The notes beneath the pieces were generated by a model. It was not told the origin of the DNA. It saw only the letters and a program-made list of their open reading frames with translations, and did not search any database. Of a stretch of 64,000 bases of DNA, positions 9,391 through 42,195 are shown piece after piece. The stretch spans positions 186,001 through 250,000 of the forward strand of contig VJWM01000044.1 of the NCBI GenBank assembly GCA_010909165.1. The letters are read 5' to 3'. The position numbers and the translations under genes are program-made. This DNA comes from Anthoceros angustus. Its lineage: Eukaryota; Plantae; Anthocerotophyta. The first letter of the stretch is position 1; each line of letters opens with the position of its first letter.

Positions 9391-12366
9391 CTCCGCCGAT
9401 CCTCGTCACGCCAGCTGGGAACACGCAGATGTCAAGGCGCCCGCAGCTGCTGCAGGGAGGATGGACTCGCAGGGAAAAGGATGCGGCCCGGCCCGCATCC
9501 CGGCCCCGCCCCACATGGCAGCAAGCTGCCAATGCGAAGTTTTATATAGTCAGGGCGAGGGAGAGAGGCAGAGGAGGAGGGAGGGCAGTGGCACACACCG
9601 GCATCCGCCCTTACCGGACGTTGGACTTGGCATCACGTGTTAGCGCACACAACACGCCCCTGGTGGAGAACCCGGAAACAACCAAGACCCGAGCATTTCG
9701 GAATCCGTTTCCAGGTGAATCCAGAAGGTTTGAGACACGCGTCACTGATGCCACGTGAGCTTGTCTGCCTCCTAAACTCTGTTCAGGCAAGCAAGGAAAC
9801 GAAACGAAAAGGCAATCTCGGCCTATACGCTAGGTGTAGTCGAGGCCGGTTACAAAATGGACAGCGAGATAGGTGGGATAGCAGAGCGTAGGGTATTGGT
9901 ATCATGGAGTCGCTGGATGGAGAAAAGAGCAAAACTCCGTTGGTGTAGAAGGGGGCTAGCCATAATGTAAGTGGATTCGTTGCGAGGGGGGAGTAATGGT
10001 TGGAAAATAATGGCCATGATGGAATTGCTTTTGCCAATGGTGCTAGGACTTTTAAGTCTATGGTGCAAGATGTACCAAAATGATGCCCAACTCACTTTTG
10101 CATCTTGGTACGCTCTTACTTGGTGGAGAACTTATGTTCAGAGTACTGAGCAAGGTAATAGAGTGGAAACTATTTCCACCTGGGTAGAATTCAAAGATGC
10201 ACGGCAACTTCAATTCCAGCCAACTAATGCATCTATGCTAGCAAGAAGGATGCTAGAGAATGTGAAGCACACAGGAATGTTGCGGCAGTATGTGAGTGAA
10301 TTTAGCACAGCTGTGTTACAATGCCCTGATATGCAGGAGGTGGATAAGCTCCATAGGTTTTATAGTGGACTCAAGAGGTGGGCTCTGGATAGAATTCAGA
10401 TGACAAAACCTCAAACTCTGCGAGGGGCTATTGTAGCTGCAGATGCGATACTTGACACAAGTCGTGCCGAGGAAGCACCATTGTCTTTCAGAGGAAGGTA
10501 TCCAAGATCTTTTCAGGGAAGATCAAGAGGTAGAGGAAGAGCCACCAACACTGGGCATATTGGAACAAATGAAAATGTTGGTAGAGGCAGAGGAAGAGGA
10601 AGAGGAGCCAATAGAGGTCGTGGCCGTGGAAGCCAAAGGACGACAGGCCCTCAATTTGGTGCGTGCTTCAGTTGTGGAGAGCAAGGACATTTTGCGAAAG
10701 ATTGTCCGCATGCTGGGAATTCCCAACTGAATGTGATAGCCGCCAATCCTCAAGCTCCGGGACTTAGGATTCAGGAGCTTTCTGCAGAGCCCAAATGATG
10801 CCAGTGGCCACATGTTGTTGTGACAGCATGTGGTGAGTCATCTAGTGTCAAGGATGACACTATTTTGAGGGAAGGTGGAGCCCTTATGTATATATGTGGG
10901 AAGATGAATGGCTTAGAAGTAGAGTTATTGTTGGACTCGCCACCCACAATTTCATAACTCCTCGCAAGGCGAAAGAGCTTGGGCTAGAATGGGCTAGTAC
11001 TTCCGCGCCATATGGAATCAAGCAAGCTAAAGGAACTCTGCTTTTCTTGGGTGAATTGCATGGAGTAAAGCTGCAAATAGAAGCGTGGGAAGGATACATG
11101 AGTTTCACAGTTGTAGACATGGATGACCATGATGTTATCTTGGGTCTAGAGTGGATGAAATCCAATGAAGTGCGTGTAGATGTGAAGTCCCGCACCATTG
11201 AGATATTGAAGAATGGAAAGCACAAGGTGGTTTGTGCTAATCTTAGTCAGAAGCTTGAGATGTGCTCAGTACAGTTGATTTCAAAAGAGAGCTCAAGCAG
11301 GACATAAGACAAAAGAAGGAGCTTTATCTAGTTATGCTCCAGGATTAGAGGATGGTCTTGAGGAAGAATCCTCAGAACAGAAAGACATCCCGAAGGAATT
11401 ACAAGTTGTCTTGGATGATTTTAAGGATTTGATGCTTGATGAATTGCCACCTTTACCGTCTCACAGAGTAGTAAATCATGGGATTGAATTAAGGCCAGGG
11501 AGTACGCCTTCATCGAGAGCACCATATAGATTGTCGTAGGATGAGCTGCAGGAACTCAAGCGACAACTATCCAACTTGTTGGCAAAGGGATATATCAGAG
11601 TCTCGAAGTCTCCTTTTGGTGCGCCGGTATTGTTTACGCGCAAGAAGAATGGAGGACTAAGGATGTGTTTAGATTACGAGCTCGAATCAAATTACGATGA
11701 AGAATGCATATCCTTTGCCAAGAATGGATGATATGTTTGAGTTGAAGGGTGCCAAGTATTTCACCAAGCTAGATCGATGGCGGGTACTATCGATCGTAAT
11801 CGCAGAGGGACATGAGTACAAAAGCGACATGTAGGACCGTGTATGGGGCTTTTGAATTTGGTCATGCCATTTGGACTTACTAATGCACCGCCACATTTTA
11901 TACACTTATGAATACTATATTCATAGATCTCGTGGACAAGTGTGTTGTAATCTATCTGGATGATATTTTGATCTTTAGCCATACCTTGGAGGAACATGCT
12001 GAACACTTAAGAGAAGTGTTACAAAAGCTAAGAGAGAATTCTTTGTTCTTGGCAGTGTGACTTCGTCAAGACATAGGTAGCTTTCTTAGGCTTTATTATC
12101 TCTGCTGATGGCATCAGAATGGATCAAGATTGGCAACCTCCTAGGAACATTCATGAGGTTCGCAGTTTTATGGGTTTGGCTTTTGTGTGTAGGAGATTTG
12201 TACATATGTTTGCTAAGATAGCAGCCCCTATAACTGACCTCTTAAAGATGACGAAAGCTTGGAAGTGGGATGTTGAATGTCAAGCAGCATTTGAATACTT
12301 GAAGATGAAATTGAGCACAATTCCGGTTTTAGGAATGTATAATCCCAAGAAGGATGTGGAAGTGTA

Positions 12367-14879: not shown

Positions 14880-15641
14880 TGTACAGCGATGCCTCAGACG
14901 TGGCCATAGGTGGAGTGTTGATGCAAGACCATAAGCCGATAGCTTTTGAGTCAAGGAAATTGCATCCTTATGAGTTGAAGTATCCCACCTATGAGAAGGA
15001 AATGACTGCTGTCATTCATTGTCTGAAGGTATAAAGACACTATCTCTTGGGCAGATCTTTTGTGCTCTATACTGATAATATCAGCACAACATACTTCTCT
15101 AACCAATTGAAGTTGTATGCAAGACAAGCTAGATGGCAAGATTTCCTAGCTATGTATGATGTGACTCTCAAGTATAAACTTGGAAAAGAGAATAAGGTTG
15201 CAGATGCGCTGAGTTGCAAGAAGAGTCAGGAAGTAAAGGCAATGGCAATGCTGGTTGAACCTATGGACACTCACAAGCAGATCAAGGAAGCATATCTGCA
15301 GGATCCAGATGTTCAAGACTGGATTAATGGAATAGAGCGGAAAGGAAGCAAGTTCAAACTGAGGGATGGTTTGTTGATATACAAACAAAAGAGGATTGTG
15401 ATCCCAAATTCTTCAGAATTGAAGAGCAAATTGCTTGCTGAATGTCATGATGTGCCAAGTGCAAGTCACCGTGGAATTGACCCCACTTATGAGAAGCTAA
15501 GGAAGTTGTTTTACTGGCCGGGAATGTATCAGGATACAGTGGATTATGTCAAGGCATGTGCTGTTTGTCAGCAGGATAAGGTGGAGCAAGCTAAACCAAG
15601 AGGTTTGCTACAGCCCCTACCTATTCCAAGTGGACCATGGA

Positions 15642-16055
15642 AGTATGCACAAGTTGCGCATCCTTAGAGAACTTGATTGCTGCCCAAGGTGAAGTCTCCA
15701 CGATGCATGATTCGCAAAAGATGAAGATTAGAGTAGCATTGGGCATATGATAGTATAGAGCTCAAGCATAGAGAGCTATAGCTCTGATACTATGATGAGA
15801 ATCAATAGCTCTTAGGCACAAAGTGCTAGAATACAATGAATTAAGAAAGCAAGAGTACAAGCCTATTTAAAGGCCATATGGTTGCAACCATAAGTTGTTG
15901 CAACCAACTTGTAACTATAAAGTAGTTATAACTAATAACTACCATCTATTAACTACCAAAAATAACTACCTATGCCTTAGCATTTAATTAATCATTAAAT
16001 GCTAGTGCCCTAGTGAATAGTGCCCTAGTGCCCTAGATGGTCATATATTTCATTT
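15642..16055 (-). mobile_element. Copia-type 5' LTR (about 15793-16055) with Met-tRNA PBS and a short internal stretch, antisense within the gypsy integrase
   Basis: GCTCTGATACTA at 15781-15792 is the reverse complement of TAGTATCAGAGC (canonical PBS TGGTATCAGAGC) and abuts TGATGAG, the LTR end. A TTTAAATA box lies on the minus strand near 15865. The right boundary is approximate. Confidence 0.7.
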
Positions 16056-20774: not shown

Positions 20775-21997
20775 CATTCAGCACAGACTTTAGAAGTAGG
20801 ACTCAGTTATACCCCAAAATGATCACAGTCTCCAGCATCTAGAGTATCCACGATATCACGGGCCCACGGGCTCGAACGGTGAGTGTACAAGCCATCTCTC
20901 CAGTTCAACAAATGTCTCGTAGCAGGTCTTGGAAGAGATAGTCGATCACCCAACGGGCTCAGATGTGTACAACACATGCTTTGGCAGACTTGCGGGAGGA
21001 GCCGTAGGCAGCATGTGTAATTCATCAACAGAGGGGAGAGAAGTGGTTGTCAGATGATCAAATAGTTAAAAAAGAGATCAAACTCGGTAGTGGTGCAGGG
21101 AGCACGCAGAACGAGACTGTGTACAGCCAGGTTGCTTTGGAGTGCGGGACATACCGAATGCAGATACGTCGACGTGCGCCGATACATGCATGAAGGCAGG
21201 CCTTGGCATGCAACAGTGTGATGAAATCATTCACTGGGAGTTTGGGACAGACGTGCACGCATATTGAAGTTGGTGTGATATGACTGCGAGATTGACCCGC
21301 AGGGCTCGGAGCTCAGGGGGCCACGGTGAAAGGTCTTGCACAGAAGAGAAGACTCGCATTCCACAACTCAGTATTACGAACACGCCACTGAATAGAGCGC
21401 GCACACGAAGTCTAAATTCATCCCTACCACTGCTAATCCAGGTCTGCGATTCCTCGCTGCGAGAGCGGCCAAGGTGCATACTAGTTGACAGCAAGAGGAG
21501 ATCTGAGAAATCAGATGGAACTGCCAATAGAAGAGCAGCTGCGGCTGTAGCTTGCAGTGCAGTGTCCTCCAGAGCAAGAAGGATGCAAACAGGATATGGG
21601 TGACATGGGCCTACCAGCAAGCTGCTCACAGAGTCTAGGTCTATCAGAGGCCATGTCTCTCGAACAAACAGGAGACTGCAGCCAGCTTGCGCTCAGGAAG
21701 TCGGTGCTGGAGGTGTCCTGAGTTAAAAGCCAGGGCAACACTAAAACCTGGATCGAACAAAAACCGCTCGATCGAACGTTGCTGGTCGAGATGATGCAGA
21801 CTAGGCCCATGCTCCTGAGCTGCTCCGCTCCTGCAAAACTGCAAGCACAGAAACGCAACAATCGCAGGATCGAGTACATACACGTCGTGAAAAGTCAGCT
21901 GAGCAGAAACCAGCTCACTCGTGCACTATAAGGAAAGTGAAGCTCGGTGAACAAACACACGAGGCAGCAACGAGGAGGAGCGACTGAGAGCTAGCAG

Positions 21998-22078
21998 ATG
22001 TGATATTGGCGCGGCTCAATCTGATGCCTTCGCTACGCCCTAGCGTTGTCATCTGATTGAGCCTTACCAACATCACAT
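21998..22078 (-). ncRNA. MIR171: MIR171 precursor hairpin; mature miR171 UUGAGCCGCGCCAAUAUCACA at 22019-21999
   Basis: The 3' arm GAUUGAGCCGCGCCAAUAUCACAU pairs with the 5' arm AUGUGAUGUUGGUAAGGCUCAAUC (2 mismatches, 2 G:U), with a structured loop between them. The mature sequence matches the conserved miR170/171 family. Confidence 0.95.
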
Positions 22079-22537
22079 ACATTTCACTACTCAGACACCA
22101 CGTCTCTCGTCTCGCAGCCAGGCCAGAACAGAACAGAGCCAACACGCAAGATTGCAGCGGGAGGTGAAGCTGATCCACGTACGGTGTCGCCTTGCACACG
22201 GCGACAGGCGAGCCACCAAAGTGAACGACACCAGCAGAGGGTTCCACGCTCTTAGCTTTCTCCAGAGACAAGGAGGTGAACTCCAAGAGTCCCAGAAATC
22301 CAGCAGTACCCAATCTAGACACGCAAGGAGCAAAACCAAGGCCAGGGCCACGCCTGGGACAACCCGCTCTCCCAAGCCCCGCGGACAGAGCGTGAACTCC
22401 CCACGCAGCCCTTGCCCCAGCTCATCCCCAAGTATCTAATTCACGGGTCACACAACAAAGGAGAAACCCGCCGGTTGAAATAGGAAAGAGCAGCCCAGCA
22501 GGGCAGAGCAGAGCAGAAGAGAGCAGGGCGGAGCCGA

Positions 22538-24723: not shown

Positions 24724-25503
24724 CTATTTCTTGTTTGACTTTGACTTAGAACTCTCTGCTTCACCAGTTACAGGGTTGATGTTCACCAATATATCAGAGA
24801 AGCTGGGCATAACTTCAATCTCTTTGAGTTTTCCTGTGGGTTTACTTTGTTTTGCTTCTGGCCATGAAGCTTGAGCTGGCCAAGGATTATTAGCAGGCAT
24901 TAACTGAACGGTAGCTGTTTCTTCGGGAGGCAACAAGACATGTGGCCTCGCCAGCAATTGAACAGCTTGTTTGAAGTCTTCCTTCTGGCCCATTGGAACT
25001 TCGTGGTCATCTGAATCGGGACCAAAATGCAAAGCTTCTACACTTTTTAACAATTTGGCTTGGTTTTGCAAGTTCTTTTTAAATTGCAGGGATGAGCCAG
25101 CCCCATTTTTATTCCTATCGTAATTTATGACCAAGGATCTGTGTGATCCAGGTTTTCTTAAATTACCAGCTTCACCTCTTACCAAAGGCCTATCAGGCCT
25201 GCAGCAAAAATCGGTTTTTGTTGTAGCAATACGTCTTAACCTATGCAATAATGCATGATTTTCCCTTTCAATTTCCCTCAATCTAGATTCTTCTAATTGG
25301 GCTCGTTTAGCATTCAATTGTTTGTCCAAACCTCCATTAGGTCCTTTATTATCAATAGCAGCTTTCATGTGCCTTAATCGTTCCAAGTGCCGTCTATGGT
25401 GGTTGCCACGATCCCAATCCAAAAAAGGAGTTCTCCTCATAAACATTTGATGTCTACTTTCTTGTTGGGATGCATTTAATGCATATCTGCTTTTTTCAGT
25501 CAT
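24724..25503 (-). CDS. CFAP97: Intronless CFAP97/KIAA1430-domain (cilia/flagella-associated) protein, 259 aa
   Basis: WDRGNHHRRHLERLRHMKAAIDNKGP..NAKRAQLEESRLREIERENHALLHRLRRIA fits the family signature (W..H..+L..K..IDN..P..K+.QLE..R...IEREN..LL.RL..I). The ORF is uninterrupted in AT-rich DNA. Confidence 0.8.
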   Translation of the reverse strand: MTEKSRYALNASQQESRHQMFMRRTPFLDWDRGNHHRRHLERLRHMKAAIDNKGPNGGLDKQLNAKRAQLEESRLREIERENHALLHRLRRIATTKTDFCCRPDRPLVRGEAGNLRKPGSHRSLVINYDRNKNGAGSSLQFKKNLQNQAKLLKSVEALHFGPDSDDHEVPMGQKEDFKQAVQLLARPHVLLPPEETATVQLMPANNPWPAQASWPEAKQSKPTGKLKEIEVMPSFSDILVNINPVTGEAESSKSKSNKK

Positions 25504-31913: not shown

Positions 31914-34830
31914 CCTAACGCGTTTTACCACCCCCACCACCTCCGTGGCATAGGTTCCAGTGTCCAGCTCCGCTCTTCCTAGGGTGCCTCTTTCATCATG
32001 GGAATGGTTGTAGACCTATGTGGATCACATCCTTGGGTTGTTTGAAACCCTCTTTCCATGTCAGTGCATCTTCCGCAGGCTTTCTACGCACCTCCACGAT
32101 GATGCTCGCTTAGCGTTATGTCTTCCTCTGGATCGCCTTGTTAACTCCCATGACGAGCTGGCCTCGTGTCTTCTCCTGCTTCTCCCTTAGTGTTGTTTGC
32201 GCTGTTCTAGGGGTGGGGCCTTTGGCCATCGGGAGGTCACAAGCCGTATTTTCGGGATGGCAATTGAGTATCTCTCCATCCAGGAAGAGCTTTGTGTGCT
32301 TTTAAGGCTCATGCGAAATCTACACAACGGATGGAACAAGCACTGGGAAATGCGGCAAACTTGCAGCACTGCAAGTTGCTTGGCCAAGCGGGTAAATATG
32401 CCCGTGTCGCTAAAGCTCTTCGCCCCCTCCCTTTGGCCCCTACTTTGGAGGGACCATTGCAGCCCTCCGAGCCCTTCATCCGGCCCCAAAGGACGCCATC
32501 CCCTGGGACATATATAACTATGTGAACCCTTCTCTTTAGATCAAGCGGCTTTTGCCCTGAGCTTCTTGATGACCTCACACCTTCATCTGCCAAGTTGTCT
32601 AGAATGGTGTTTGAACGCCTCAGGGACCTTTTTCTCCCTGAAGACCCTTCTAGCGACTTCCCATAGCTCTTTTTCCTAGCTGCTACCGTGGCTCGGGTAG
32701 AGACGCCTCACAGAATCTCTCATGTTCTTGTAGCTAGCAGGCTTGTTGCCATGGACAAGCCCGCCCCCTCCTGTGGCGTGCATCCTCTTGCGGTTGGGGA
32801 AGCCTTTATGCGGCCGTAGTATTGCCCTCCAATACTACTCCTTTCTCCAGTAGCATCTCGATCCCCTCCAATTTGGCATTGCCACTCCAGGGGGTTGCGA
32901 GTCCGTGGTGTTTGGAGTTAAGGCATGCCTTGACACCCACCCGGATTGGGTGGTCTTATAGATGGATGTTGAGAATGCCTTCAATACCATCTCTAGAGGC
33001 ATTATCTTTGAGGAGCTCAGGGATAGAGGCGGTGTCTTAGGGAGCCTTATCCCTTTTTCTCGGTGCTTCTATGGGAGGTCCTTCAACCTCTATTATCAGT
33101 ACAAGAACGCATCATCGGGATTTACAATCTCTGACTTGGAATCAGCTACAAGTACTAGGCAAGGCGACCCTCTGGGCGGTGCTCTCTTTGCCACTGCTCA
33201 CTACAGGGCCCTATCCAGGGCTACCTCCTCAGCACATGACTTTGTCTTGCCTTCGCTGATAGATGACTCTTACATCCTTGGGCCTGGGGACAAGGTCAAG
33301 AAGGCCTTTGAGCTCTTCTCTCATAAGCTTTTTTTGGCGGGCTTGAAGGTCAAGCCGTCCAAGTGTCGAGTCAGGTCTCCATCGGGGAACCTCCCTACTT
33401 TGCAATTCCTTGAAGGGAAGATTGCTTCGGCCTTAGGCCTACGGATTTTGGGGGTCCCCTTTGGCTTCCTTGACTTTATCGGGAGTTTCCTAGACCAGAC
33501 TCTCGCGGAGGACCTCTCCCACATCGAGGACTTCCCTTTACTGGAGGATGCAAAGGTGGGTATTGTTTTGCTAGGCGCGCTGGTTACCTCATCCACACGT
33601 TGCCCCCTTCTCCGGTCATTTTGTTCTGGCTATAAAGGTTTGATAAGAAGATCATTGACATTCTAGGTGATATCATAGGCCCTGGGTTTTTGAGTGCCCT
33701 GCAAGCGATGTGGCCTTGTGGCAAGCATCACTGCTAGTGCAACGTGGAGGCACATGTCTTCTCTCGCTGGAGGTACCTTCCTCGGTGGCATTTTTGGGCA
33801 GCTGGGCCCTCTCTGCCCCTACTATGGCCGCCCGCTTCACCGCCATGACAAGCCCCTTTTGGAGGATCTTGTGTCAAGAGTCAGGAGGAGGGAACCTTCC
33901 CACTCCAAGTATCTTTGAGACTGGCCAGGGATATGCTACCATGCGTAGAAGGACTTCCCTTCTTTCACGAGATTCATCACCAATGGCTTTAGAGGGTTGC
34001 AGGCGTCCCTGCTCGAGAAGCAGCTTGGCAAGGCTTTCCAATCTGTCCTCCTGGACCCCTTCATCTCCAGGTCCACAAGAGCTTGGCTTCGCTCTTGCTC
34101 TGCGAAGAGCGCAGGCGCTTGGCTATTAGCTCGTCCATGTATTCGGGGTTTTCACATCGCACCAACCAGCTTCTCTATTGTGATGCGATTCCATCTTGGC
34201 CTCCTCCAGCCTGTGGCTTCGTCCCTCCTTAACTGCGAGTGCTGCTCTATCTTCAAGGACTCTGGATACACCTTCCTCATTGATCCCCTGGGGGCCATCG
34301 CATCGCCACCCATGACGCCATTTGCGATGTCATGTTCGTCATAGCTCGCGAAAGTGGCTGCATGGCCTACAGGGAGTGGGGGTACACTCTTCGTATAGGT
34401 CGGTCAATCAGGGCTAATTTGTACCTCGTCCGCGGCGACCAAGTTTCGGTGGCGGACATGGTGGTCACTAACCCTATACGCGACAAAGATCTCCGCCGTG
34501 TAATCACTAATCGTCTGTGTTAGCACGGACGGCAACTTTCAAAGTCAAGAAATAAAGCGGAATGCAAGCGGGCCACCAATTCATTTCGCTCGCCCTTGAA
34601 ACATATAGGGCATTGGCTAAGGACTTTGATGCATTTCTCAAGTCCTGCGCCAAGGCTTATATCTCATGCCCGTAGGCATGGTGCGGGACTATCCCTTTCT
34701 TCTTTCATGGCGTTCTTCAGACAACGGGTCTCAATTGCTCTCCATTTTAAAGTGGCAAATAGAGCAGACAGAAGGAAGTGGTTCGCTGATCCCAATTTGT
34801 AGCCTTCTCACATTAAGTGTATTGATATCG
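31914..34830 (+). mobile_element. Degenerate CRE-clade non-LTR retrotransposon (RT plus C-terminal Cys knuckle and restriction-like endonuclease)
   Basis: HPLAVGEAF, QFGIATPGGCE, DVENAFNTISR, RQGDPLGGALF, LIDD and LGVPFG in the RT. The C-terminal region has AWLLARP..MRFHLGL..CEC..HRIATHD..E..R(A)N..VADMVV and RQRVSIAL. No APE domain precedes the RT. Boundaries are approximate. Confidence 0.8.
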
Positions 34831-36075: not shown

Positions 36076-37117
36076 AGTACTAGTCTACTTTCGTGGGATG
36101 ACCTATCCGGAAGTGCATATCATCCTTCCCTTCAAGCCTCTAGGTACAATGCATGTCTGACTTTAGTACTTCCAAATGCAAATATTTTAGAATAATTCCT
36201 AAAATAAATCTAAAGAAATTTTATATTACAAAAAATCAATGCATGATATAAGAATAATATAATTTTATAGAATCTTAATCTAATTCTCAAAATAATATAA
36301 ATGATTAAGTTTTTCTTAAACCATGTGCATCTAAAAGAGGGAACAAAGTCACAAAGTTGAATTATCAACATCTTAAGGACTTGAAGAATAAAACAATTTA
36401 CAAGAGAAAAATATTTATGTATTATATTTTTAAATTTATGATTCTCATTTTGTCCTTTTATCAGTTGACTTTGTAACATGAATGAGAGTATGCACTTAGA
36501 TTAATGAAATATACAAAATCTTTAAAATTGCTAGCTGTTACCTCGATACCTGCACCTTGTACAACACACTAAGTTTTAGAGCACCACACATATGTTGAAC
36601 AAGTGTTAATGGCTGCATAATATATGAATTAAGAAAGAATAATCTTAACGCATAGTTGACCTATATTTGAATATCAACTTTGTTAAATTGAATGATGAGT
36701 GCATCGGTTACCTACTTTCTAAATTGATTGCGTGTTTAATGCTCGACAACTCTAGAATCACGTGTTCCAATTATGTAAGACATAGCACATCATGTTGTTC
36801 ACCTGTTATGTGTTCAGGTACTTATATATATCATCGCAATTCCACTAATAAATTCCACATAAACATTGGTTGTGGATCCAACAAATTCTACATGAACATT
36901 GGTTGTGGATCCAACAAACAAAAGTTTCTATATCAACATTGGTTGTAGGATTCAACATTGACGTCGAAGCTTTTCATCTAAAGGTATATAACTCTTTTAT
37001 TTTTTTAATATTTTAATGATCTTATATATGAATCTTTTTGCCTAACACTTTGTGGTTTACATGTCTAAAGAATATAAGCAATATTTTCAACTATCAGAAC
37101 TAAAGACGACTTAAAGG

Positions 37118-38604
37118 ATGAAGGCTTTATGGATGATGGTATTGACAACTTTCTTGATAGCAATGGTAATAAGCCTTGAATTCTATTGTGAATAAGCCTT
37201 GAATTCTATCTTTTCAATGTGTAGAAGATATCGTGAACATTGATGATGGCAGCACAACCTTTTCATGCACATGGTATCATGAAAAATATTTAACTCAATT
37301 GTATGTGTTTTAAACAGGCAAACTTCAGTGTTGCTGTCCCACCATATTATTTGCATTCAATGAATAGAAAGTTATTTGAAAAAAATGCAAAAGAGACCGA
37401 GCTTTCATTACCTTTGATGAGCATGATGCCGAATAAGATCATACTAAATTATTGGAAGGCAAGATTTGGTTCCATGGATATGCCTGCAGGGTTGCAAAAT
37501 TTGGCATCTCCAATGTCCTTTCAAAATTTAGAGCAAACAAACAATGCAAATGTTCTCTTGCACAAGCTATGTTACTCACCATATCTTGTGTGTAATGTTT
37601 CCTCTAAAGTTGATTTGAGCAATACAATATCTGATGGATTCCCAGGATATTTCCGTGATTATAATGTAGAACGATCGGAAGCTACTTTGAGCGATGCGGC
37701 ATCATCAGGATTTCCATCATACATGCGTGATTATTTGACACCATTGAAAGCCACTTTGAGCGATTCAGAATCAGCAGGATTTCCATCATACATGCGCGAT
37801 TATGTTGCACGAGTAAACGAAAAGAAACACTCGACATCTATGACTCCGTTGATGGAGGAAAAAATAAAACTTGTCGAAGCTGTTTGGTTTCGTGAGAAAG
37901 ACTTGATTAACCAGCATGAGGTAGGTAATGTTCTAAGAAAACCTGCCCAAATATTTATTGCTCGTCCTACTGAGTGGGGTCCAAAGAAGTTTCTTCCGCT
38001 CGTTATTCTTGAGGCACTTGGAGGTTCAAAATTAGAAGCACCTGATCTTCTCAAAAACTTGAAAATCCAAGCAGATTCTCCATTAGCTACTCAAGTATTT
38101 CAAACGATGCGAATATGCAACATGTCCAAGGAACTATCACTCCAAGGAGAAATCAAAAAATGTCTTAACTCAGTTGAAGAAATTATTGATTTTTTGAAGC
38201 ATGTATTTAAGTCAGAAATTACCAAATTATCCACCATAGAAATGTTGGAGACCTCTTCCCTCGATGCACAAAATGAAGTGGTACTCAAAGGTGAATTTAA
38301 ATTATCAACTCTTGAATTGAAGAATGATGTGGAATCGAAATATGTATCATGTCACTCTATGAACTTTCCCTCCAAAATGGAAGTGTGCCACTATATTCCA
38401 AGTACAAAAATATATCTTGTGTCTTTAGAATCTACTATTAGCAAAGGCTATACAATTAAGAATGTAGTCCTATGCCATACAGATACAAGTAAGTGGAGTC
38501 CAGATCATATTGCTTTCAAAGCGTTGAAAGCAAAACCCGGTGACGGCACTTTATGTCACTTTTCTGAAGCTAATGCCTTTTCATTTATTCTTCATAATCA
38601 ATAA
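37118..38604 (+). CDS. Secreted BURP-domain protein, about 444 aa, with three GFP(S/G)Y(M/F)RDY repeats; exons 37118-37165 and 37318-38604
   Basis: The signal-peptide exon MKALWMMVLTTFLIAM splices in phase 0 to ANFSVA. WFREKDL marks the start of the domain. The BURP signature CH-X10-CH-X27-CH-X25-CH-X8-F is intact (the terminal W is replaced by F). Confidence 0.9.
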
Positions 38605-39710: not shown

Positions 39711-41147
39711 TCAGGCTGCAGCAAGGTGTACCAAGAGGCCAACCATACCGGCGTTGATGTATGTGGTGGGCTCGGCCTGCCCGTAGTTGCTGCGGTCGTC
39801 GGCATAAGCATCGGCCTCGTCGGGTCCTCCCACAATGCCGCCCGTGAGCTGGTTGGGGTCGGAAGTGCTGGCTTTGTAGTAGGAGAAGCTGGCAGAGCAG
39901 TCGATCTCGGCGGGGTGAGTCTTCATGCACGGCACTGAAGCCGCGCGATGGTGAACCCGTTGGGCGAAGCTGGATCCAAATCCCACCATGTACGACATGC
40001 TCTGAGGGTTGTCACCCAGAATGTAGTCCACCTGCGCAGCAGCCACAGTATGATCGGACTCATGAGCCAGCAGAAACCGTTACCAGTGGAGCAGGAGCCA
40101 AATATCATTCAGACCGTACCTGGGTTTTGGCATGGGCACAGAGCTGGCTGGGACTGATGGTCGTGGTGCCACAGGTGACTGTCTGCTAAGATGCATCAAG
40201 GTACTTGGCGTAGACAACGAGGAGGAAAGAGGATGCGGTCACGTACTGCAGATTGCTGCCTGTCGCGAAGTAGAAGAGCCCGCCTGCAGATGGACAAGTC
40301 GATCCATGCGATCAATTATGTGAAACTGCAATCAGTGTTCAGTCAGGCTTCCACCAACTTGAAGGCAAGGCCAGGGGAGAGGGATTCAAACGAATGTAGA
40401 ACCATTACCAGGAGTGGACTTGGCTGCAGAGACGCCTGGCATGATGCCGCACACGAATGCATCCGCTTGCTGCTTGTAGCCCTGTAGACCGTCGGCTTTC
40501 CCAGCAAGGAAGAACTGCGAAGCCAGGACCTGAGCGCCCGCGTATTTGTTGTCCCAGCTGAGTGTGGGAGCGGAGGTGGTGGAGCCACCCAGCTCCTCGC
40601 CGTTGTCCACCAGGTATTGGAGGTATTTGTCGTCCCTGGATGCCTTGAAGAGCCAGGCTGCTCCCCACAGCAGCTCATCCTTGAAGCCAGAGTAGGAGCA
40701 GTAGAAGGGGCACACTTGCGGCTTCAGTGACCCCTCGCTGTAGGCCCCTCTGTACTGGTCCGCAAACGAGAAGAGCTCAGTGGCGCTGGCCAGAAGCGTA
40801 GCAGAGTACTGGGCGTCAGTGGCTAGGAACACAATGGATGGGGCGGCCAGGGCGGCAGCCGTTTCCGCAGCAGCGTCGGACCCTGGATTTGTTGCATCAA
40901 TCTTGTACGCAGTGTACAGCTCGGTTGGCCCAGTGTGAGCTTTGAGCAGATAGTCAGTCCCCCAACGGATGGCATCCTGTGCATTGGTCATCTCTCCCGC
41001 TGCACTCAGCTCTTTGCCCTTCTCGATCACCGTCCACGACAGCAGCGTGATGGTGAAGGCCATGGGCAGGCCGAACTTGACATTGTCGCCAGCATCGTAG
41101 TGTCCTCCCACCAAATCCACGCTGGACGAGGTGCCATCAGTCAAGCT
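39711..41147 (-). pseudogene. GH9 endo-1,4-beta-glucanase, middle and 3' portion
   Basis: DLVGGHYDAGDNVKFGLP, PGSDAAAETAAA, DELLWGAAWL, SWDNK, SNLQYV, VDYILGDNP, HHRAAS and EPTTYINA are present. The VQVGD..CWERPEDM segment is deleted between TELY and TAYK, there is an in-frame TAG at 40186-40188, and the 5' end is displaced to 43 kb. Confidence 0.92.
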
Positions 41148-42195
41148 GCTGCTCATCGGAGACTCTGGCGTGGGGAAGAGCAGTCTTCTGCTGCGCTTCA
41201 CCGCTGACACCTTCGACGAGTTGGCTCCAACCATCGGTGTGATTTCTGCTTGCTCGTTTACGGACAGTTTCGTTCATCCTGCAGCATTTGAGCCGGGGAA
41301 CATTCGGCTCGGCAGGTGTGGATTTCAAGCTCAAGTTGATGACCCTGAGTGGGAGAAGACTGAAGCTCACAATTTGGGACACAGGTAGGTTGCAAGCTGT
41401 CTCAGCTCGATTGGGAGTCGGACTGCTTTGTGCGGCAACTGGAAGTCTCTTTCACGGTTAGAAAGTCTGAGAGACGTTTGTTTGTGTTGTTTGTTGGTGT
41501 GGTTGTTGTGCACAGCGGGCCAAGAGAGGTTTCGGACGCTTACCAGCTCGTACTACAGAGGGGCGCATGGCATCATCCTAGGTTGCGGTTGAATTAGCCA
41601 AGTTTTCCCAGCTTGTGTAATGCTCTGCTGAACCCTAGTTTATGTGGCGCAGTTTATGACGTGACGCGTCGTGAAACATTTACGGATCTGTCGGATGTGT
41701 GGTTGAAGGAAGTGGACCTGTACTCCACCAATGCCGACTGCATTAAGATGTTGGTGGGCAACAACGTGGATAGGGTGGGTGGGAGCCAAAACTTTCAACT
41801 TCACAGTTGAGGGAGTAGGACGAGCAGAGTCTTGTTTCTAAGAGTAGTATTTTTCATAAATGCTGCTTTCTGCAGAACGCAGAACGTGTTGTGTCCAAAC
41901 AGGAAGGGGTGGATTTTGCCAGGCAGCATGGGTGCCTCTTTCTAGAGTGCAGTGCTAAAACTCGCATCAATGTGCAACAATGTTTTGAGGAACTTGTACA
42001 GAAGGTAATGTTGAGTGCAGCTAATCCAGCTCAAGCTTGTTACTCATAGGCTCTAACATATCTTCTTGCGTGTAACAGATTCTGGACACTCCCAGTTTGT
42101 TAGCTGACACAAAGGGCTACAAGAAGACCACGATTCTTACACCAGAGCCTGCCCAACCTACCACAGCGCCAGCCAGCAGTGATTGCGCATGTTAA
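41141..42195 (+). pseudogene. RABC: 5'-truncated RabC/Rab18 small GTPase; exons 41141-41236, 41316-41384, 41516-41581, 41653-41774, 41876-42004, 42079-42195
   Basis: [46 protein letters not shown] and the C-terminal CAC prenylation motif are present. The start codon and promoter are missing, and NKxD reads GNNVD. Confidence 0.93.

Follow-up and report, generated by a model that had tools for sequence, protein, structure and literature searches.

The window analysed here is a 64,000-nt stretch of the Anthoceros angustus genome. Read from its sequence, it carries on the plus strand, at 37118-38604, a two-exon gene for a BURP-domain protein, whose ATG stands at 37118 (Table 1). The first exon ends at a GT at 37166 (GTAATA), and the acceptor AG ends at 37317, from where the frame runs on into the listed exon-2 open reading frame (ORF). 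At 37% GC the 428 codons of exon 2 would stay open by chance with P ~5e-14, and in a 91-row alignment this exon departs from none of the invariant or 90% conserved columns. We regard it as almost certain that the gene is intact and belongs to the BURP family. The N-terminus reads as a signal peptide, hence the protein is called secreted here.

Two genomic contigs, L001 and L002, from the nearest relatives give the gene model comparative support. Both have a short exon with a hydrophobic N-terminus (18 or 12 codons, ending in GTAAG), and a phase-0 intron some 200 nt long stands between it and the conserved protein. Arabidopsis PG1-beta-like genes also consist of two exons with a short intron between them (PMC4460304). 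The DNA run from which L001 and L002 come (SRR33208241) encodes at least two members of the clade described below, P0002 and P0003, both built with the signal-peptide exon and intron just described, so the clade has expanded in at least one plant.

Two public runs from one sample of the organism were searched for the gene. The RNA-labelled run yielded nothing from the 37118-38604 stretch, and the DNA run yielded short, error-rich contigs with many 1-nt deletions. Some 200 nt upstream of the BURP ATG, at 36850-36918, stand 2.1 copies of a 33-nt tandem repeat (94% matches), and a 23-nt tandem repeat at 37153-37203 straddles the exon-1 donor.

The BURP gene is surrounded by a transposon-rich region. 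The neighbouring GH9 endoglucanase exon is 45-56% identical to moss, lycophyte, gymnosperm and angiosperm proteins alike, and its GC3 of 70% contrasts sharply with the 32% of the BURP exon. Upstream of the BURP gene are a MIR171 precursor and a CFAP97-domain ORF; CFAP97 is a cilia/flagella gene, pointing to a plant with motile sperm. With Marchantia among the closest relatives of the BURP protein, a non-seed plant is plausible on these sequence grounds, although Ginkgo or a cycad might fit too.

Table 1. Features of the BURP gene and its surroundings, in order of position within the window (residue numbers are those of the exon-2 translation)
Feature	Position	Strand	Details
gag with zinc knuckle, weak Ty3-capsid match	9971-10798		ORF with retrotransposon domains
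Integrase zinc-binding domain ORF	15047-15667		
MIR171 precursor hairpin	21990-22086	both	above Rfam gathering score, 65.9 and 59.3 bits
259-aa ORF, Hemingway/CFAP97 domain	24724-25503	-	Pfam E 8e-12
Weak reverse-transcriptase match	32962-33666		E 1.4e-05, below Pfam cut-off
BURP gene, exon 1	37118-37165	+	16 codons, MKALWMMVLTTFLIAM; signal-peptide n- and h-regions, by sequence reading
BURP gene, intron	37166-37317	+	152 nt, GT..AG, phase 0, AT-rich; read from sequence
BURP gene, exon 2	37318-38604	+	428 codons plus stop; remainder of protein
N-terminal short segment, NYW..MP..SPMS..C-x6-C	37435-37593	+	from clade alignment and AlphaFold2 model
Repeat unit 1	37615-37662	+	shortened TISD leader, core GFPGYFRDY (37636-37662)
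Repeat unit 2	37666-37734	+	ATLSD leader, core GFPSYMRDY (37708-37734)
Repeat unit 3	37735-37803	+	ATLSD leader, core GFPSYMRDY (37777-37803)
WF start motif	37885-37890	+	upstream of Pfam BURP match
BURP domain PF03181	37954-38586	+	Pfam E 2e-39, residues 213-423
CH motif 1	38350-38355	+	Cys345-His346
CH motif 2	38386-38391	+	Cys357-His358
CH motif 3	38473-38478	+	Cys386-His387
CH motif 4	38554-38559	+	Cys413-His414
GH9 endoglucanase exons	ORFs 39711-40046, 40386-41234	-	convergent with BURP gene

BURP domain and repeat region

The BURP domain scores 135.9 bits against a Pfam cut-off of 27. All four Cys and all four His of the CH-X10-CH-X25-27-CH-X25-26-CH pattern are present, with spacings of X10, X27 and X25; after the last CH the usual X8-W is replaced by X8-F, a variant shared by 20 of 150 relatives. 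Since 146 of the 150 BURP relatives keep the CH motif intact, it cannot separate cyclases from other BURP proteins. A sequence search of the PDB matched 8sy2 (E 1.6e-10).

An AlphaFold2 model was built from the 91-row alignment (mean pLDDT 78). It is confident throughout the BURP domain (pLDDT about 90 or more) and across residues 41-90 of the short segment (87-96 over residues 41-70), where the clade alignment shows no variation at W46, P56, C85 and C92. The sole Foldseek match of the model was the cyclase of peanut (8SY3/8SY2), aligned over 145 columns at an rmsd of 2.9 A with probability 1.0; a look-up in the ESM Atlas gave 'BURP' and nothing more. Residues 96-155 and 162-168, which cover the three repeats, have pLDDT below 50. 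No docking of a core in the copper site was predicted in the full-length model, and when the model was truncated to begin at repeat 3 this repeat was again unplaced (pLDDT <50); by themselves the two models speak neither for nor against docking.

The three repeat units, containing four FxxY motifs, recur with a period of 23-24 residues in the disordered linker that immediately precedes the BURP domain. The core of unit 1, GFPGYFRDY, holds two overlapping FxxY motifs. Our script located the cores where the first-pass annotation had placed them and found the ATLSD..S.G leader in units 2 and 3; the signal peptide and four-CH BURP domain that it had described were likewise recovered in place.

Units 2 and 3 are a 69-nt tandem duplication, 83% identical by repeat search. 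Compared in codon register they differ at 13 of 69 nt, and 12 of these differences fall in the 42-nt leader/spacer, where ten of them alter eight amino acids. The single difference in the 27-nt core is synonymous (hypergeometric P 0.008, for a core window picked post hoc). Between units 1 and 2 the codons for Phe and for the first Tyr differ synonymously only, and the frame G-F-P-x-Y-x-R-D-Y is retained. A conserved core with a drifting spacer is the pattern to be seen in repeated functional motifs.

Relatives and descent

Protein searches were run with exon 2. A word-index search gave one match, in Spirodela (32%), and a clade-profile search returned the same Spirodela protein together with P0012, itself a row of the query alignment. 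Exhaustive HMMER searching found 678 BURP proteins, none of them more than 39% identical in the public collections searched. Proteins from Logan sequencing-run assemblies matched best, followed by the sole BURP protein of Marchantia polymorpha; the HMMER matches also include SkrBURP (P0096, QXY82431.1), whose BURP domain is 34% identical. Judged by these comparisons, the window protein appears to be a very divergent addition to the known BURP proteins with Tyr-containing repeats.

Two trees were computed, one from 150 rows and a careful one from 57 rows. Both set an RD22/USP side (111 rows) against a second side (39 rows), with 98/91 support in the careful tree. The second side includes the PG1-beta-like Typha BURP12-like protein, a Medicago 'polygalacturonase non-catalytic protein' and a Welwitschia protein, and also fern, Ginkgo and moss proteins, SkrBURP and the window protein. 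The window protein belongs to a 10-row clade with the Marchantia protein (support 94/97). SkrBURP is the sister of this clade in the best tree, with support of only 54/77, and may be the nearest relative that has been characterised.

Nesting of the window protein within the seed-plant PG1-beta clade is rejected (AU p 0.0034). An RD22/USP/BNM2-type identity is rejected as well: that type lies on the opposite side of the tree (98/91), and the window protein has no TXV repeats.

The layout common to the clade is a short segment (YW..P..SPLS..C-x5-8-C), a variable region, the WF motif and the BURP domain. In a regular-expression test the short segment was found in 20 of the 39 rows of the PG1-beta side and in 0 of the 111 rows of the RD22/USP side; PG1-beta-like proteins and a Ceratodon protein have it too. 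The Marchantia protein (Mp6g16190, P0006; uncharacterised) shares the N-terminal segment and domain order with the window protein, but is 30% identical and repeat-free, with a single WYYY cluster in its variable region. Among the closest clade members the FPxY-type repeat motif is absent from the variable regions, so the repeats appear to be lineage-specific. One conserved aromatic core for the whole clade (WYYY in Marchantia, FYYY in P0078, RYSYRDE in P0010) is unsupported, P0002 and P0011 having nothing comparable.

In P0004, a Logan protein of the same clade, all four CH His are lost (CE, CR, CY, CT), and a 227-residue Met/Pro-rich repeat region stands where the window protein has its repeats; repeats in this region alone therefore do not imply catalysis. 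The moss protein from Ceratodon purpureus (P0111, KAG0580295.1) is another uncharacterised Tyr-repeat BURP protein of a non-seed plant; behind the short segment that it shares, DKSAYMYKGAD recurs more than 20 times.

PG1-beta, the non-catalytic polygalacturonase subunit, and AtPGL1-3 show the same order as the window protein, namely signal peptide, YW..SPLS..CxnC segment, FxxY-type repeats and BURP domain, and the same two-exon gene with a short intron (PMC4460304). In the BURP tree, too, they share its main side (98/91) with the window protein. The core F-x-(S/G)-Y of the window protein fits the PG1-beta unit consensus (D)(S)-F-(T/K)-(S/G)-Y-G...N. PG1-beta has about 21 repeats with a 14-residue period, whereas the window protein has 3 at 23-24 residues; the window cores, unlike those of PG1-beta, have a Pro after the Phe and a second Tyr four residues past the first (SYMRDY). 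The cores are FxxY motifs at the same place as the PG1-beta repeats, which makes the architecture PG1-beta-like. The gene is thus PG1-beta-like by architecture and outside the seed-plant PG1-beta clade by descent. The first-pass annotation had named nesting among PG1-beta-type structural BURPs as a point against its reading; this caveat holds in part, for the architecture and the FxxY cores are of PG1-beta type, although the tree places the gene outside that clade.

Possible self-modification of the repeats

That BURP cyclases give rise to cyclic peptides in plants was recognised only recently, and SkrBURP is the one characterised member from a non-seed plant. Fused BURP proteins are copper-dependent autocatalytic cyclases (PMC11253845, PMC12186524, PMC12164859), and the first-pass annotation was correct on this background, as on the VLFYPSY cores of SkrBURP (PMC11253845). 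The four His are the copper ligands, and ArbB2 loses its cyclase activity on mutation of the three His that were tested (PMC12186524, PMC12164859). Two rings form in the selanine A core, xLxYxxY: the first, 14-membered, joins Leu and Tyr, and the second, 17-membered, is closed by the last Tyr (PMC12871766). In Ziziphus jujuba FPIY is a validated core, whose Tyr-O is joined by ZjuBURP to the Pro-C-beta in a 14-membered ring, and fusion of precursor and cyclase increases the yield (PMC12871766). Elaeagnin (LPIIY) likewise has a Pro-Tyr ether (PMC10349150).

A second literature concerns PG1-beta. Sergeant 2017 reported for alfalfa, hemp, Arabidopsis and maize that each Phe identified in the PG1-beta FxxY motifs had lost 2 Da, and attributed the -2 Da to dehydro-Phe, formed by an enzyme not identified there (PMC5313189). 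This contradicts the idea that the PG1-beta FxxY repeats are unmodified structural elements. Mature tomato PG1-beta is mostly the FxxY region, the short segment and the BURP domain being cleaved off (PMC4460304). No paper tying the PG1-beta -2 Da modification to BURP cyclase chemistry was found in the literature searched, which lay outside the subscription journals.

Three known cyclases invite comparison with the window protein. SkrBURP, too, carries Tyr-containing repeats ahead of the BURP domain within one protein, and aromatic-P-S-Y is common to both (YPSY vs FPSY). It differs in having nine cores and no YW..CxnC segment, and in the Leu of xLxY, which is required for its first ring; the window protein is without this Leu-x-Tyr element. 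The ZjuBURP/ZjuPrec-FPIY system of Ziziphus jujuba has the same F-P-x-Y core pattern, a likeness by motif, but it is an angiosperm system with split precursor and cyclase genes, and its Tyr is C-terminal in a 4-residue core. AhyBURP of peanut (8SY2/8SY3) has the same fold and four-CH copper site, but as a USP-type protein it stands across the tree from the window protein, to which it is 28% identical over 145 aligned columns; the window repeats bear no relation to its Trp/Tyr core, QPYGVYTW.

We propose, with a probability of roughly 45%, that the BURP domain of the window protein oxidises its own three F-P-x-Y motifs. The protein would enter the secretory pathway and its BURP domain would be loaded with copper. 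The loaded domain would then oxidise the three G-F-P-(S/G)-Y motifs, with a loss of 2 Da at each, in the disordered linker, some 25 to 75 residues ahead of the WF motif. The product could be a 14-membered ring closed by an ether between Tyr-O and Pro-C-beta, as in the cyFPIY of Ziziphus; a Tyr-O to aromatic-C-beta ether in a 17-membered ring, as in the YxxY of selanine A; or dehydro-Phe at -2 Da, as reported for the PG1-beta FxxY motifs. The modified stretch might either stay in a cell-wall protein, as in PG1-beta, or be excised as a cyclic peptide, as in the burpitides.

The catalytic prerequisites are present in the gene and its model: four intact CH motifs, a confidently modelled BURP fold and Tyr repeats upstream. 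These features and the FPIY precedent, a stronger one than the first-pass annotation had cited, partly support the description of the gene as a candidate Tyr-crosslinking precursor given there; what that description has to accommodate is the PG1-beta-type architecture. The window gene would be a second, very divergent non-seed-plant candidate, at most 39% identical to public proteins and in the clade of the Marchantia BURP protein. Its FPxY core combines two validated ring motifs, and its PG1-beta-like layout joins the burpitide chemistry with the unexplained -2 Da Phe of the PG1-beta literature.

If the repeats are modified, self-crosslinking at FxxY is perhaps a general and ancient property of the BURP family. 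A broader form of the proposal, which we hold to be somewhat unlikely, is that all FxxY repeats on the PG1-beta side, those of PG1-beta included, may be substrates of their own BURP domains. Were it true, the -2 Da of 2017 would be a BURP-made Tyr-O-C-beta ether, or a dehydrogenation from the same C-beta radical. Self-modification at aromatic-x-x-Tyr would then be an ancestral BURP function of land plants, from which the burpitide pathways were derived later. With three repeats only, the window gene would be a minimal natural substrate on which to test this idea.

Alternative readings

The protein could instead be a non-catalytic, structural BURP protein of the RD22 or AtPGL3 kind, its repeats an unmodified linker or a surface for binding, for example, cell-wall polymers, with a part in the expansion of the wall or in the response to stress. 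Most BURP proteins are without a shown enzymatic role (PMC8672867), and a GH9 endoglucanase gene adjoins this one; yet every copper-binding residue is kept, and the Phe, Pro and Tyr of the cores are preserved through synonymous changes. The variable regions of the clade are unrelated to one another, and P0004 retains repeats without any of the His, which favours this reading; PG1-beta counts against it, for the FxxY repeats of this most closely studied 'structural' protein do carry a modification (PMC5313189). We judge this reading unlikely. If the repeats are unmodified, the gene would simply be a lineage-specific BURP paralogue of the ordinary kind.

A strict fused burpitide precursor, as put forward in the first-pass annotation, would be a special case of self-modification with a release step added: the FPSY cores, and perhaps MRDY, would be cyclised and set free by a protease as a mono- or bicyclic peptide. 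The repeated leader-plus-core layout resembles SkrBURP, the FPxY core has a precedent, the core is conserved while the spacers have diverged, and basic or acidic residues stand beside the cores. Against this, there are three cores only, genes for processing enzymes (protease, methyltransferase, oxygenase) were not seen among the ORFs lying between 26 and 48 kb in the window, and in PG1-beta, the nearest architecture, the modified repeats remain within the polypeptide. Such a precursor seems distinctly improbable to us.

A silent or decaying copy with no present function, in a transposon-rich and AT-rich patch, would fit the absence of the stretch from the RNA-labelled run, the retrotransposon fragments upstream and the low GC3 beside the GH9 exon, but it is very unlikely given the open frame of 428 codons, the intact conserved residues, the splice signals and conserved exon structure that are kept, and the similarly low GC3 (34%) of the CFAP97 ORF in the same window.
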